Shown: in pieces, positions 44,001 to 61,262 of the stretch
Position numbering within the stretch: position 1 is the stretch's first letter
How the letters are laid out: each line of letters starts with the position of its first letter
Assembly: GCF_037042905.1 (NCBI RefSeq)
Contig: NC_087252.1
Span: 1,054,001 to 1,118,000 of the forward strand
Length of the DNA: 64,000 nt
DNA from: Lytechinus pictus
Taxonomy: Eukaryota
Direction: 5' to 3'
The notes under the pieces: model-generated
Told to the model about the DNA's origin: nothing
Database searches by the model: none
What the model saw: only the letters and a program-made list of their open reading frames with translations
Position numbers and translations under genes: made by a program

Positions 44001-45259
44001 ATCTGAGCGGGTGGTGCCACAACTCTGATAACATACATGTTTAGTGTTATATGTTCAGGCTACATTGGGGCTACATTAGACTCTAAACCGACCGATGGTC
44101 TCTCATGCTAATAGCTTTTGTCGGCCTGGAGTCGGCTTTACTGGCGCTACCCGGGGCGTTACCGTAGCATTACCATAACTAACATGACTGTGTATTTGTT
44201 CTTTTATTTTATTCCCTTTACAATTTACAAGATAATTATTAAATCATGAAATATAATAACATCTTTGTACTGGTTGAACCGTAAACAGAAATGATAAACA
44301 GATTTTTCACAGATCCCAACTTCTCTCTGTCTTTATCTCGTTCTCTCCCACATATAGACTATCATACACACACCCACCCTCAACCCACCCATACACCCAC
44401 ACACAACTAAAACCAAATCACAACACGCGCGGGCACTCAAAATACAGATGGATAATGACGAAGACTGAAGTGTGCAACAGAAAATTTGGAGGCAACTAAT
44501 TCATGTAATTCTTACCGATTTTTATTTTGCATTTGGATCAAAAGTTCAAATTTGTGGATCATTTTAGAAAGGTTACCTTTTTGAATAGGTTAATCTTACA
44601 TTAATGATAAACAGATAGAGATCATTAACAGATCCCAAATTTCTCTCTTGCTCACTCTGTGTGTGTCTATGTCACTCTCTCGCTCACACAGACTCTCACA
44701 CTCATCCGCAAACCTCGCTCTCATACGCGCACTCATTAAATCAAACAAACATGTACGCACCCATATACACACCCACCCTAGTGCACACGCACACAACTAG
44801 AACCAAAGCACCATGAGCGCGCACACACTCAGAATACACACACAGCCAAGGATGAAAATACATAAAGCATGTACCAGCGGTAATTGGGGATTCTTGTTAC
44901 CATGAAGCTATGTCCTCCCAGTGGGTAGAGCAGATCAGAACAATCAATCACATAATCAATCAATTAATCAATCCATCCATCAGTTTATCAACCAACCAAT
45001 CGATCAATCAATTATTTAATTAATCTATCAATCAATCTACCAATCAATCAACCAATCAATCTATTTTTCCCCTTTTTTCTCCTTTTTAAAATAATTTTGA
45101 ATTATCAGTGCATCACAACCTAAAACCAATTACAGTTTTTGAAAAAAGCAACCAATATTAGGGCCTATCATGACAATCATGACAATATTCCACAACATAC
45201 ATTATACACATACATTGCACGTTGGCAAAGTAAAATAATGCATTAACAAAATAAGGGAT

Positions 45260-46823
45260 TTATTGATTTTTTTATTCGTCTTCAACATAAAGAAATAAAC
45301 ATCTTAACTAATACCCCATATTGAGTGACTAATAAACACATTGATTAAATTGGATGATTGAACTTGCAATGTAAACATCAATGAAACCATTTCTTCAGAT
45401 ATGTTACCATGGTTACTAATAACTCTTACCTCTTTAATTCATTTTCTCTCGACGTGTTTAAGGCAAAACTTGGAAGCCAAGAGAATGACATTGTCTGTAA
45501 CAATAATACCAATCGTTACATAAATAGTTAAATAAATAAATAGCCTATTCTGTATGTTTCCTTACCAATTTGAATTACAGTCGGCAGCACAGTGCTATTT
45601 ATCAGTCCATTTTGTAGGACTGCCTAATGCAATATGTGTAATGAGCGTTTAATATGAATTTGATAAATTGTGTTATTCAAATATCATTCAAAATCATTAG
45701 AATAACCAAGATCACTAAGCATTTCATCGTAATCTAATTGTTTGTGTCAGCTTCTGATTTTGACGGAAGGATTTCACTAAAAATATCATGAATATGTTTA
45801 TTCTACATGACCAGCACTCTGTCGCTGTGTAGGATTTTAAGTTTTATCAGTTGTATGGGCCTAAAACCTCACTCTGCTAACCAGAAATAGTAGGCCTACA
45901 CTTAAAAAAACTATGCAAGCGATATGGAGCATTAGCCCTTTACATAATGGGAAATAAACACAAACATGCATCTAGCTCTGCGTGAAGTCTTATATTCTTT
46001 GGAAGATCGTTGTTGTTGAAGTTGTGTCAGTCAAGAACATTTATGTACAATCACAAAAATCAGACCCACACCTAGGACCCCGTTTTACAAATAGTTGCAA
46101 TTGATCCGATCAGCATCACTCCAAAATGAAAGTTTGTTCAAAATATTTACGAGATGTGATGTATGTTCTCATACATTCATCATTCTCGTGAAAATTCAGT
46201 GTGATTCTCTTTGTTTACAATGAAGAAAAATTATGGCATGGATGTATTTCCATGTAGTCAAGATTGATTTGATCAATCGTAACTATTTGTGAGACGGGGC
46301 CCAGATCGATCAACAAAGTAATACGATGTTTTCAATAAGATATAATTGGTCAAGTTGGAGTTGGTTTCATTCGTGTGCCTGCGACATTGGCAAGTTTTCG
46401 CAACATTACGCAGACGCTTTCTGCAACGTTTAGAATCTATTGATTGCCTGTCAAATCACAATGAACCGTTCAGAGGTCTTTGTCGAAGATTGGTGAACCT
46501 GGACAGCTGATCGAAACATTCTGAGCTGACCAAAAATGGCAAATATATCATTTGTCCAGTTTCCAAGATGAGACTGCTGTTTTAATTTTCGACAAAGACT
46601 GCTTTGTCATGAAGAGCTTTTGTTGTAGAATCAGTCCCCGTCGCGATTGAGAAAACTTGGTATTGATACAGTACACTATAATGTGTATGTTGCCGGACAT
46701 TGGAATAAATGTGAGCATGACAAGATGAAAATAAACTGAAGGTCGGTGAATGGTGTCCAAAGCAAAAAATAGGCATCGGGAAATTAATAAATCACCATTC
46801 CAGTCAGGATCTGCTGATACGAT
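45260..46823 (-). other. Prepropeptide gene A, non-coding terminal (3'UTR) exon; 3' end approximate
   Basis: Pyrimidine-rich acceptor ...ttttgacccaatttag at 46824-46825; shares sequence blocks with the gene B 3'UTR; AATAAA on the minus strand at 45260-45265 and 45271-45276. Confidence 0.5.
46073..46303. mobile_element. MITE
   Basis: ggaccccgttttacaaatagttgcaattgatc...gatcaatcgtaactatttgtgagacggggccc. Confidence 0.7.
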
Positions 46824-46904
46824 CTAAATTGGGTCAAAAGAGAAACATAGAAATAGTTAATCTGATTAATAATTATATGAATCATGGGCACTTACTCCTA
46901 CATC

Positions 46905-47258
46905 ATAATGATAGTAATAGTTACGTTTCTATAGCACTACATACTTTGGTTTCTAAGCGCTTTACATTGTCATTATTCTTTTTATCCCGGTCATAACATC
47001 CACTACTGCTCCGCACATAAAGCTCACCATCTCCACTCCCTGGGGAGTATCCTGACCAGGCAACCATTTATCGGTGCACATGTGTCAATCTAATCACATG
47101 CGTGTACATCCTACCGGGTAGCCATTTAACACATGGGTGGAGAGTGACAAACGTGGATAAGTGCATTGTCAAAGGACATTAGTGCCGGGTGGGATTCGAA
47201 CCCTCGACTCTTGGTTTAAGTGTAAAATGACAAAACCGCTACATCACGAAACCTCCAC
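46905..47258 (-). mobile_element. tRNA-derived SINE in the last intron of gene A
   Basis: gggattcgaaccc B box on the reverse strand; cctaccgggta.ccattt core. Confidence 0.7.
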
Positions 47259-47460
47259 TAAAAATAAGGACCATTTCTCTCCCCCCCCCCCTTGCACCAC
47301 TCTCTAAAGATCTGATTAAAATGATTTTGAAGAAAAAATAAGTTTCAAAAACATAGGTGACAATATGTAATTATGTATTGTCACCTATATTCAGTATGAC
47401 TATGTACATGGTATAAGATGAAAGTATAACTCACCATATGCAGTTGCGTGTTTTATGATA

Positions 47461-58706: not shown

Positions 58707-60277
58707 ACCAGATAACGCTCTAAACATGCGTATGAAGCATGCCACCATGTACATAAATAAATCAATAATTTCATTAACAAATTAACAAAAATAAAAAAAG
58801 GAAAAAGAAATGAATAATTATTTAAAAAAAAACAAATATATCAAGGGCGTAGGCTGGGGTGCGCTGGATGCATGTGCACCCTCCCGCTGAGGCGAAGGAA
58901 TTCCGACACTGGCAAGCAAAACGAAATGTGTACCCCTCCTGCTTTCAACAGCTGATTTTCCAAACGTTAGTTCCACCTCCCCAAGATGTGCAGTGTGCAC
59001 CCCATACCACTTTAGTTCTACCTGCCCATGCTCAAACCAGTCTATAAAAAAACAATATAAAAATAACAAAAAACGTCTTTAATAACTAGAAACTCCAAAA
59101 CTTAACGAGGCAAGAAAGACGCCCTTCAGTCTCATGTGTAACCAAACGTGAACACAGAAGACTTACTTTACATTACGATACGTCAGGCAAACATCTTTTC
59201 AAAAGATGACATTTGAAGTAATATTGGCTCTGTAAATTGGTTGGATTCGGACAAATGAAGCGATTCAGAGCCGCCGAGCAAGATAACGTTTACTACAAGT
59301 CATGACCAACGTTTATTGGGCGATTAGAGGGAACATTATCAGTGATATGCTGACAGGAAACGTTAAATACATTTTTGGGGGGTAAATATTCCAATGAAGA
59401 ACTCATTAAAAATGAATATGAAGTGAAGGTTTAGAAGAGAAAGATTGATCAAAGAAAATAATAACATTTTAATTGTTGTCCTCTCTGAAATAACAATTTT
59501 CAACTATTAAAAATATAACAATAATAAATTATTAGATGATTTTTAACAATTCATGTGAGATTTAATAAAGATTCGCTGATTTCTTCTTTCATCAATCATC
59601 CATACAATACCATTACTGAAAAGAAAGACAATATTATTTTTTTATGGATGTTAATGCAAACTTGTAGGCCTGGAATATATTTCCTCTATTGGTTTTTCAT
59701 ATTATTTGGAATGGTTTTTCCCAGAACGTTACCAATTCAAAAATATTTTGCAATTTGCATATAAGAAGATTTTGTTAGAGCATGGCCTTACGCAGCAGGG
59801 GAGTGGTAGGGGACAAGGCAGTTACGCCCCCCCCCCCCACACACACACACACACACAATTTTGAAAACTTCCAATTTTCTGACAATTTCACAAAATTCAC
59901 CAAAGTGTGAACGAAATCCTTCAATTTCACTCTCACAAAGGCAAAAGCGCATCACTGACCATTTTTTGTACCCTATAGGTTGAATTACAGACGATCTGTA
60001 AACTATACCAATTGATGAGAGACCTATGGTTGGTGTTTAACACGGGAACTTGACCACCGTTGACAATGGTAATTGGAATAGCATGTGGTGCATGGAATTA
60101 AACTAGATTTAGTCTACTACGCTTGTCAATCTTCGCCATCTCACTAAGATAGCATCTCATCCGTGACGTCACAATACAGACTGGCGGCAGCAAAGGTGTT
60201 TGTCCAACACAATATAAGCACAAACAACAAGCTAAAGAGGCATATAACATGAACACAGAATTTATCTTAATACTCAC

Positions 60278-60314
60278 GAAAATTCGAGAAAAAATAGGAA
60301 TGAAAGAAGATTGA
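60278..60314 (-). other. Candidate 37-nt 5'UTR exon of gene B
   Basis: Strong acceptor ggtatttctctttcag (60315-60316) and donor gtgagt (60272-60277). Confidence 0.4.
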
Positions 60315-61156
60315 CTGAAAGAGAAATACCATTTTCAGATTCTTTCTAACATTACTATGACATTGTACAGTTCCTTTCTTTAAACTCGTTGCGTGCAAAT
60401 TTGCCAATAATTGCCATTACATAAGGTCGATTATTGGGGACTTAAATTCAATATTTGATATTTTTATCATTTTGAAAAAAGTGCAGAATTTAGCAATCAT
60501 TATCATTATTATCTATCCCTAGCTTAGACTTGCAATTTTGATTGATTGCTTTGATTTCTGCATTCAATGCCTCAAATATAAGTACAGTTTCAGCTCTGTA
60601 GAGTTTATATATAGTTGATCTGAACGACTGAAGAAATATCAGTTTAATAAGATCAAACAGCTTTATTCTTGTGATTTAAAAGTACGATAAACATTCACTT
60701 TCTAAATGAAAAACTCTACACGGTATAATATTTAATAATCTGAAAAATGTCTTGATATTATAGATATATTTTCTTTCATGAAATTTGAACTATTTAAGGT
60801 TAAATTGTAAACAATACTGAATGTTTGCGAAATGGGCCTACAGACATATTAGCCGTCATTATTGTATTTCATCAGTTAACAACAGTTTCAGAAATCATAA
60901 GAGATGCTTAATTCTATATAGTATTAAAGTCCTGAACCAATACCACTGCCCGTATTCTGGTCTTTCCTCATACATGTCATAATTGTACATAAATAAATAG
61001 GCCCCTTGGTCGTAAATGATGGTAGGAAATCGGACCATTAATTTAAAAGAATCGGAAGCTCGTGGTATTTTCTTATAGGTATAGAGAAAGAGAAGAGATA
61101 CAAAATAAAATAATCAGAGACATACAAATGAAAATTTTGAAAAAGGTATTACTTAC

Positions 61157-61262
61157 AGTTGTTCGAAATTAGGATATCTTGGCAGAATCGACAGAGTGGT
61201 TTCTTCTCAGATGACTTCAAACTATCCTTTCGCTGATCCCTGATGATGGACGGTTTATATAG
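61157..61262 (-). promoter_or_regulatory. Gene B TATA box (TATATAAA, 61254-61261) and non-coding first exon
   Basis: Minus-strand TATA about 100 bp upstream of a gtaagt donor at 61151-61156; same layout as gene A. Confidence 0.55.

Follow-up and report, generated by a model that had tools for sequence, protein, structure and literature searches.

The window analysed here, 64,000 nucleotides of Lytechinus pictus (NC_087252.1, forward-strand positions 1,054,001 to 1,118,000), holds two adjacent genes on the minus strand of contig C8 of the 812-Mb genome, referred to as gene 1 and gene 2 (LOC129266860). Both are probably precursor genes of secreted peptides and members of one large, uncharacterised echinoid family. 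They are expressed in common, being abundant in the RNA runs of one study and absent from the runs of another, and they lie beside a homeobox exon at ~39540-39720 which we take to be Barx-like. An earlier interpretation made from the letters of the window (the sequence-only reading) had described a tandem two-gene family in which introns, untranslated regions (UTRs) and flanks are conserved and the mature peptides are hypervariable under diversifying selection. The strings it quoted were all found where it had placed them, both genes begin with MASKLL on the minus strand (48464 and 57894), and it is true that their mature peptides barely align. The positions of the features are compiled in Table 1.

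Table 1. Features of the two-gene locus and its surroundings (positions in the window)
Feature	Position	Strand	Basis or remark
Gene 1	49.4-45.25 kb	minus	four exons, spliced RNA contigs
Gene 1 TATA box (TATAAAA)	49403-49409	minus	direct reading; ~36 nt upstream of the RNA contig 5' end (~49367)
Gene 1 exon 1, non-coding	49325-49367, 5' end approximate	minus	RNA joint 49325/48491, GT..AG, run X1
Gene 1 exon 2	48283-48491, ATG 48464	minus	RNA joints on both sides, runs X1 and X2
Gene 1 exon 3, 66 nt	47435-47500, stop TAA 47463-47461	minus	RNA joints 48283/47500 and 47435/46823
Gene 1 exon 4, ~1.6-kb 3'UTR	45250-46823, 3' end approximate	minus	RNA contig pieces from 46823 to 45311
Gene 2 (LOC129266860)	61.3-53.7 kb	minus	RefSeq protein match
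Gene 2 TATA box (TATATAAA)	61254-61261	minus	direct reading; predicted non-coding exon 1 ends at 61157
Gene 2 exon 2	57675-57900, ATG 57894	minus	100% match to the LOC129266860 protein
Gene 2 cysteine exon	54872-54949	minus	RefSeq protein; M-C-PPIPGSSQE-C-W-C-FKKPPHKIFH-C-F-G
Gene 2 last coding piece, ..ISNGK	53758-53777, stop 53760-53758	minus	located by translation, agrees with the RefSeq protein
Lysine-rich alternative exon, 156 nt	56692-56847	minus	in-frame cassette with its own ATG, in the long intron of gene 2
Short stop-containing exon plus 14-mer of gene 2 in the sequence-only reading	55476-55545	minus	intronic, not in the annotated product
~260-bp dispersed repeat, MITE-like (miniature inverted-repeat transposable element)	46390-46657		inside the gene 1 3'UTR; ends match other copies in both orientations
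Second ~260-bp repeat copy	54480-54752		gene 2 intron between the cysteine exon and the last exon
Repeat unit F	50582-50892		upstream of gene 1, downstream of gene 2; genome-wide matches only at 44266-44845
Two further F units	~44600-44845 and 44266-44450		downstream of gene 1; split by a mid-copy repeat at 44453-44566
Conserved non-coding anchor downstream of gene 2	51435-51570		77% to S. purpuratus L028 18496-18633; matched in Diadema too
Conserved anchor, Barx side	43619-43929		84% to S. purpuratus L028 19163-19463
Homeobox exon	~39540-39720 (39.5-39.7 kb)	plus	translation; convergent with gene 1
Assembly gap	49892-50049		~480 bp upstream of the gene 1 TATA box
Assembly gap	52179-52779		~1 kb downstream of the gene 2 stop codon

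The structure of gene 1 was read from spliced contigs of two RNA runs, which define three GT..AG introns; the depth over the exons was ~150-250 and the intron bins were at zero. Exon 2 encodes a signal peptide (MASKLLLVLAF...) followed by an acidic pro-region with KRDP and SKRG sites and ends in phase 2 (..GRPF). Exon 3 reads ..VFPYGWRYGGKK before the stop and has no cysteine, and AATAAA signals start at 45276 and 45264 near the 3' end. The spliced RNA bears out the gene 1 model of the sequence-only reading, with its non-coding exon 1, signal/pro exon, 66-nt stop exon and 3'UTR exon. The precursor of 73 amino acids ends in ..MSKR-GKSKEGRPFVFPYGWRYG-GKK, from which a linear, cationic, amidated 18-mer is predicted. 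The public collections searched gave no protein model for gene 1.

In L. variegatus exon 2 is 97-98% and exon 3 94-98% identical to gene 1, compared with ~75-82% in the introns, and neither Lytechinus species shows a break in the open reading frame (ORF), the two KR sites or the GKK end. The exon 2 ORF is also present in a third, more distant species, where the intron can no longer be aligned. The promoter and exon 1 stretch (49289-49891) is 90-92% identical to L. variegatus versus 75-82% in the neighbouring introns. Copies of a short interspersed nuclear element (SINE) of tRNA-like type with a ..GGTTCGAATCCC.. box were found at 47030-47217 (minus strand) in intron 3 of gene 1 and, inverted, at 50330-50492 upstream of the gene; they account for the inverted self-match and the repeat-derived read depth of this region, and the same type of SINE also occurs in the S. 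purpuratus locus.

Exon 2 of gene 2 encodes a signal peptide and an acidic pro-region with KR and RR sites and ends in phase 1 after ..RRYF; every word sampled from it was present in RNA runs X1, X2, X3 and X11. The RefSeq protein (105 amino acids) and its L. variegatus orthologue join this exon to 54949-54872 and 53777-53758, and the 3'UTR extends beyond 53758. The gene 2 model of the sequence-only reading was wrong at this point: ~55545-55508 was rejected as an exon, as the NCBI-supported coding sequence (CDS) uses the cysteine exon and the last piece named above, and near 55.5 kb the position equivalent to the gene 1 donor reads ATTAGT, not GTGAGT. The predicted product is an amidated four-cysteine peptide of ~32 residues. 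Orthologues of the same structure, with invariant motifs that include QECWC and CFG, were found in L. variegatus, S. purpuratus (XP_030833505) and Diadema setosum (XP_072166452), and across these four echinoids the cysteine exon, or mature region, is the best conserved part. The promoter block 61462-61177 of gene 2 aligns to S. purpuratus. An exact contig look-up of the RefSeq protein of gene 2 (P0002) returned no record.

The lysine-rich exon in the long intron of gene 2 is the first coding exon of the L. variegatus model XP_041469878 ('PXR1-like isoform X1') and is 76% identical to S. purpuratus; as a part of the 105-residue product of gene 2 it was rejected. Its end (..NRMIANTKYV, followed by gtaagt) resembles that of exon 2 (..NRAKANRRYF, followed by gtaagt), and it may be a degenerate internal duplicate that was overrun by an AAG repeat.

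The relatedness of genes 1 and 2 lies in their signal peptide and pro-region and is seen via other family members only. When exon 2 of either gene was used as a single-protein query of the genome, the other gene was not found, and the only two matches, both weak, were to gene 3, which is present on C8 in near-identical copies at 27.18 Mb (27,179,193, minus strand) and 39.57 Mb (39,572,016, plus strand). Exon 2 of gene 3 has MASKL, KRDP and EKRG in common with gene 1 (blastp 8.5e-9), and its next exon, which follows in phase 1 after ..RFF, reads L-C-RQPISKAV-C-K-C-..-C-R-M-G, with the framework and exon phases of gene 2. By its exon sequences gene 3 is the bridge between genes 1 and 2. Its two copies lie 12 Mb apart in opposite orientation, and the L. 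variegatus assembly carries the gene 2-gene 1 locus at two places (38.2 Mb and 40.5 Mb); both cases are explained either by true segmental duplication or by haplotypes that were not collapsed in the assembly.

With profiles the family proved to be large. An exon-2 profile found 32 loci in the genome at E ≤ 1e-5 (38 at E ≤ 1), and a profile of the cysteine exon found 19 at E < 1e-3 (24 at E ≤ 1), with the cysteine exon of gene 2 as its top match. Against a family profile built without genes 1 and 2, hhalign gave 95.9% for gene 1 (E 6e-9; genome search E 1.8e-15) and 95.4% for gene 2 (genome search E 1e-17), and since each of the two matches a profile that excludes both, both are members of the family. 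Its common plan is a signal peptide starting with M-A-(S/K/R)-K, an acidic spacer with KRDP and EKRG dibasic sites, a phase-1 intron directly after K-Y-(K/F/R) with a next exon beginning NN-TGY, and a cysteine exon of the form C-x6-9-C-(W/Y/Q/K)-C-x9-14-C with a basic loop. A Gly-Lys/Arg amidation signal is found where the C-terminus is readable, namely in the gene 2 orthologues and the C11 array. The phase-1 intron is found in gene 2 and in all nine other members examined, and gene 2 carries all three family hallmarks, the exon-2 profile, the intron phase and the cysteine exon. Gene 1 is regarded as a derived member because of its exon 2 match only, and no relic of a cysteine exon was found in its locus, between 44 and 50 kb of the window. 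The tail of gene 1, ..VF-P-Y-G-WRY-GGKK, loosely recalls the family end ..(I/V)F-x-C-F-G-..-GGKK, which is a hint only.

Further members form tandem clusters on C11, where every fetched member shows the same exon layout. At least five near-identical genes lie ~10 kb apart at 23.776-23.816 Mb of this contig; their product reads ..DKRGRRFS-V-C-THP(H/R)GFT-C-W-C-DKKF(E/K)GSDKYYRV-C-DFAAGGPIN-GR, the copies varying at two mature positions (H/R and E/K), and the exact protein of an array member was not present in the public protein collection. More loci were found by profile on C8 (5.4-6.2 Mb), C12, C13, C14 and C19; the mature-peptide comparisons cover the fetched loci, which leave out this second set. 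The C8 part of this set, on the chromosome of the window itself, comprises thirteen exon-2-type matches at 5.38-5.70 and 6.15-6.20 Mb. Only two weak cysteine-exon matches lie nearby, and the mature peptides of these members may be of a different kind.

The two genes are adjacent, on the same strand, beside a Barx-like gene and related within a wider family, all as the sequence-only reading had it, but the link that it drew through conserved non-coding DNA was not upheld. Its 3'UTR block does lie within the 3'UTR of gene 1, but is intronic in gene 2 and belongs to the ~260-bp dispersed repeat, of which there are at least 1,659 candidate copies genome-wide, with many contigs represented among the 40 scored. 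The 40 scored copies match the gene 1 copy at 77-81% and the gene 2 copy at 72-75%, and the two local copies are only 69% alike. Either local copy resembles distant copies more than it does its neighbour, and the two are independent insertions. The short stop exon of gene 1 is confirmed by two RNA joints, but its counterpart in gene 2 is not in the CDS and the 14-mer that the two were said to share is at chance level: Markov shuffles for regions of this size and composition gave a mean of 1.1 shared 14-mers, with one or more in 56% of shuffles. Both 14-mer neighbourhoods are unique in the genome and neither finds the other; a 36-nt alignment round the 14-mer (27/36) had been picked after the fact.

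A TATA box precedes each gene (49409-49403 and 61261-54) and the first intron of gene 1 is confirmed by RNA, as the reading had it, but the promoter and exon 1 regions of the two genes show no similarity above chance (local alignment z = -0.5). When 44-50 kb was compared with 50-64 kb by blastn, a comparison of the dot-plot type, no continuous, gene-wide diagonal appeared, and only the F repeat, the dispersed repeat and the SINE were returned. The shared downstream flank is real and locally restricted; it corresponds to the F unit of ~300 bp, which has a TG/GA microsatellite core and three local copies. High-copy blocks and a missing diagonal had been named by the sequence-only reading itself as the outcome that would speak against it, and this is largely what was found. 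As a caution for the reading of raw sequence, brief non-coding strings held in common in a repeat-rich genome are mostly transposons or chance.

Selection was assessed from one species pair, L. pictus and L. variegatus, with small counts. The ratio of nonsynonymous to synonymous divergence (dN/dS) was 0.012/0.042 over the whole of gene 1 (four changes, with both replacements in the mature part) and 0.041/0.081 in its mature part, from only three changes; for gene 2 it was 0.054/0.296 overall and 0.076/0.245 in the mature part. Between orthologues dN/dS of the mature peptides is ~0.3, and it is below 1 everywhere, with the highest dN in the mature region of both genes. Among paralogues, where the fetched loci are a minority of the family, pairwise identity averages 42% in the signal, 32% in the pro-region and 39% in the mature exon, the last falling to 27% when the shared cysteines are left out. 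The pattern that the sequence-only reading had proposed, a conserved signal with a hypervariable mature part, was not seen, and the best conserved part of gene 2 is its mature peptide; conotoxin-like hypervariability is absent. The synonymous divergence of gene 1 is low (0.04 versus 0.30 in gene 2), and this together with the high identity of its promoter points to constraint at the nucleotide level on gene 1.

Synteny, which the sequence-only reading had put forward as a check, separates the two genes. Gene 2 is retained in S. purpuratus and Diadema, but gene 1 is not in the syntenic interval, and no gene-1-like ORF was found in the 10-kb flanks downstream of gene 2 in either of these species. 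Between the two conserved anchors lie ~530 bp in S. purpuratus (with one GA-rich tract), ~1 kb in Diadema and 7.5 kb in L. pictus, where this segment holds F, gene 1 and the further F units. Gene 1 is in place in L. variegatus, and its exon 2 is also found in the third, more distant species. Because S. purpuratus and Diadema are without the 7.5-kb segment, gene 1 was most likely gained in the Lytechinus lineage, flanked by duplicated F units. The pro-region of gene 1 is nearer to gene 3 and the C11 members than to gene 2, and gene 1 is thus not simply a recent copy of gene 2. Judged from these alignments, the conserved one of the two is gene 2: it has stayed next to Barx in the three genera whose loci could be read (Lytechinus, Strongylocentrotus and Diadema). 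The Barx gene was itself observed in L. pictus and S. purpuratus only.

Beyond the observed gene structures, transcription, family membership, synteny and conservation, the nature of the products has to be read from the marks of prohormones in the translations, which comprise KR and RR/KK sites, ..GGKK and ..NGK ends and a signal peptide judged by eye. These marks suggest that the precursors would be secreted, cleaved at the dibasic sites, amidated and, in the members with cysteines, disulfide-bonded. For the conserved gene 2 a role as an extracellular signalling peptide appears most likely. The main reading, which we consider likely, is that of two neighbouring precursor genes of one large echinoid family, with gene 2 as the conserved member and gene 1 as a cysteine-less member gained in the Lytechinus lineage. 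Gene 1 keeps the signal/pro exon of the family but with its donor shifted to phase 2, and a short cysteine-free exon stands in place of the cysteine exon. A more far-reaching reading, a little less likely than not, is that the family with the cysteine framework (at least 32 loci, with one deeply conserved member next to Barx) would be an undescribed class of secreted amidated peptides of echinoids, and gene 1 the recent birth of a linear amidated peptide on this old scaffold, by loss of the cysteine core and a shift of the splice site.

Several observations weigh against the main reading. Gene 1 has one of the three family hallmarks, the exon-2 profile match, and departs from the intron phase (phase 2; exon 3 starts C-GTT) and from the cysteine exon. 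The direct hhalign comparison of genes 1 and 2 (72.9%) covers mostly the signal peptide, and signal peptides are compositionally biased. The residue before the amide differs between the two Lytechinus species (..RYG-amide versus ..RYS-amide), which is unusual for an amide motif that is read by a receptor. For the splicing of gene 2 the basis is conservation together with the NCBI models, one of the Diadema anchors is inverted and both are short, and S. purpuratus could carry gene 1 elsewhere, the search having covered the syntenic interval and flanks. Tandem arrays of copies that hardly differ, and a net positive charge, are as compatible with host defence as with signalling.

This last point leads to the rival that has to be taken most seriously for the amplified arrays and for gene 1, namely that the same genes and family encode host-defence (antimicrobial) products, in which an anionic pro-piece neutralises a cationic amidated peptide and copies are amplified for dosage. 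It agrees with the count of at least 32 loci, some of them in arrays of five or more almost identical genes ~10 kb apart, and by residue count the mature parts are net positive and the spacers acidic. The gene 1 product contains many aromatic residues and much Pro, Arg and Lys, the gene itself was gained in one lineage, and the depth of its mRNA ranges from nil to very high between samples. However, the charge is modest (about +2 to +4 by residue count), gene 2 is single-copy with conserved synteny, and its mature peptide is conserved to Diadema with invariant non-cysteine residues, which is more typical of a ligand with a receptor. Host defence is on balance rather unlikely as the general explanation, although a serious contender. 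Much less probable is that gene 1 is a decaying remnant, a transcribed pseudogene or long non-coding RNA with a chance ORF that lost its cysteine exon. Such an origin would suit a gene that is without the cysteine exon and intron phase of the family and without a protein model in the collections, and whose stop lies in the penultimate exon ahead of a 1.6-kb UTR with a transposon in it. Yet the coding exons are far better conserved in L. variegatus than the introns, the ORF, KR sites and GKK end are intact in both Lytechinus species and exon 2 in the third, dS is only 0.04 and the mRNA is abundant. Under the 50-55-nt rule of nonsense-mediated decay, a stop 26-28 nt before the last junction, as in gene 1, is not expected to trigger decay.

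Equally improbable, and for reasons of a different kind, is the model of the sequence-only reading. The adjacency, strand and MASKLL starts of the genes, the locally unique repeat downstream of each, the failure of their mature peptides to align, the existence of a large family and the highest dN in the mature region of both genes all agree with it. Its main conserved block, however, is a repeat with at least 1,659 candidate copies and falls in an intron of gene 2. A shared 14-mer is expected by chance, the promoter regions show no alignment, blastn gave no other diagonal, and the short exon assigned to gene 2 is non-coding. Diversifying selection is contradicted by dN/dS below 1 everywhere, by a gene 2 mature peptide that is the most conserved part across four echinoids, and by a paralogue identity of the signal of only 42% versus 39% for the mature exon. 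The main reading, of two precursor genes in one large family, is preferred, with the reservations listed above.

Around the two genes, the homeobox exon has a homeodomain gene as its counterpart at the corresponding convergent position in S. purpuratus, and the conserved blocks at 42515-43929 are possibly the 3'UTR of the homeobox gene. Beyond the homeobox exon, as seen from genes 1 and 2, the stretch 31322-31384 (minus strand) gave a weak match to the cysteine exon of the family (E 0.006 in a small search) in which two of the four cysteines are replaced (V-C-RKGENN-M-W-R-..-F-C); it is maybe a decayed family exon. Both assembly gaps fall clear of the gene 1 exons and of the gene 2 coding sequence, the alignment with L. 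variegatus stays colinear over each, and they were left as they are, with no letters supplied.

The kind of gene is ordinary, a secreted peptide precursor, and the family is sizeable and apparently undescribed. Work on how deuterostome neuropeptides and innate immunity evolved uses sea urchins as a reference group, and at least 32 genes for amidated four-cysteine peptides, with no Pfam entry and no RefSeq name, would supply candidates for the catalogues of both. Gene 2, whose peptide and place beside Barx are kept to Diadema, is a good candidate for receptor de-orphanisation, and gene 1 would be an example of a new linear peptide arising on an existing precursor scaffold.

Database searches gave no match to a described family: none in Pfam below E 0.6, none among PDB sequences below E 0.5, and in fold searches Z was at most 3.1 and the Foldseek E above 1. 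AlphaFold, in a model of only moderate confidence, places a small three-stranded sheet on the cysteine region (pLDDT ~80; 59.5 overall). Among 1.8 and 5.8 billion proteins, homologues of gene 2 were echinoid only and all 'uncharacterized', and no family sequences were found in the part of the echinoderm peptide literature that was searched, by peptide motif, by LOC/XP numbers or in two paper supplements. Spnp9/Ajnp9, Arnp21-25 and the echinoderm CCHamide-like precursors were rejected on layout, by their descriptions.

Among known systems the end of the gene 2 peptide (Cys-aromatic-Gly-x-x-x-amide, as in ..C-F-G-I-S-N-amide) is reminiscent of the C-W-G-x-H-amide and C-W-G-G-N-amide ends in the CCHamide, GGNG and elevenin group, a resemblance which we take as a lead only. 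Unlike CCHamide and GGNG with two cysteines, the family has four, and its peptide is C-terminal behind an acidic spacer; the echinoderm CCHamide-like peptides known to date directly follow the signal peptide (PMC5627052). The layout is like that of the echinoderm MCH-type and somatostatin-type precursors and of the 'Spnp/Arnp' candidates (PMC4772807, PMC5627052), with ~70-105 amino acids, a signal, an acidic spacer and a dibasic site, but the family differs from the MCH and somatostatin types by four cysteines (C-x-C-W-C-x-C) in place of two and by the lack of sequence similarity found. A single C-terminal cysteine peptide with a Gly amidation signal, conserved among orthologues, is likewise a feature of echinoderm neuropeptide precursors, which usually occur in one or two copies, unlike the at least 32 genes here.

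The family also has features in common with precursors of defence peptides and toxins. As in the alpha-defensin-like, strongylocin and centrocin precursors, an anionic pro-region precedes a cationic disulfide peptide, and tandem copies and lineage-specific members occur. Strongylocins have six cysteines and centrocins are two-chain peptides, and neither sequence nor fold of the family matched such antimicrobial precursors. Conotoxins and amphibian skin peptides form multigene superfamilies of the same order of parts, a signal, an acidic pro-piece, KR and a C-terminal mature peptide that is often amidated. As in conotoxin superfamilies, the cysteine framework is kept while the loops vary, and gene 1 represents a wholly different mature part on the same scaffold. 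In contrast to conotoxins, the identity of the signal (42%) is barely above that of the mature part (39%), dN/dS is ~0.3 and the mature peptide of gene 2 is conserved to Diadema.

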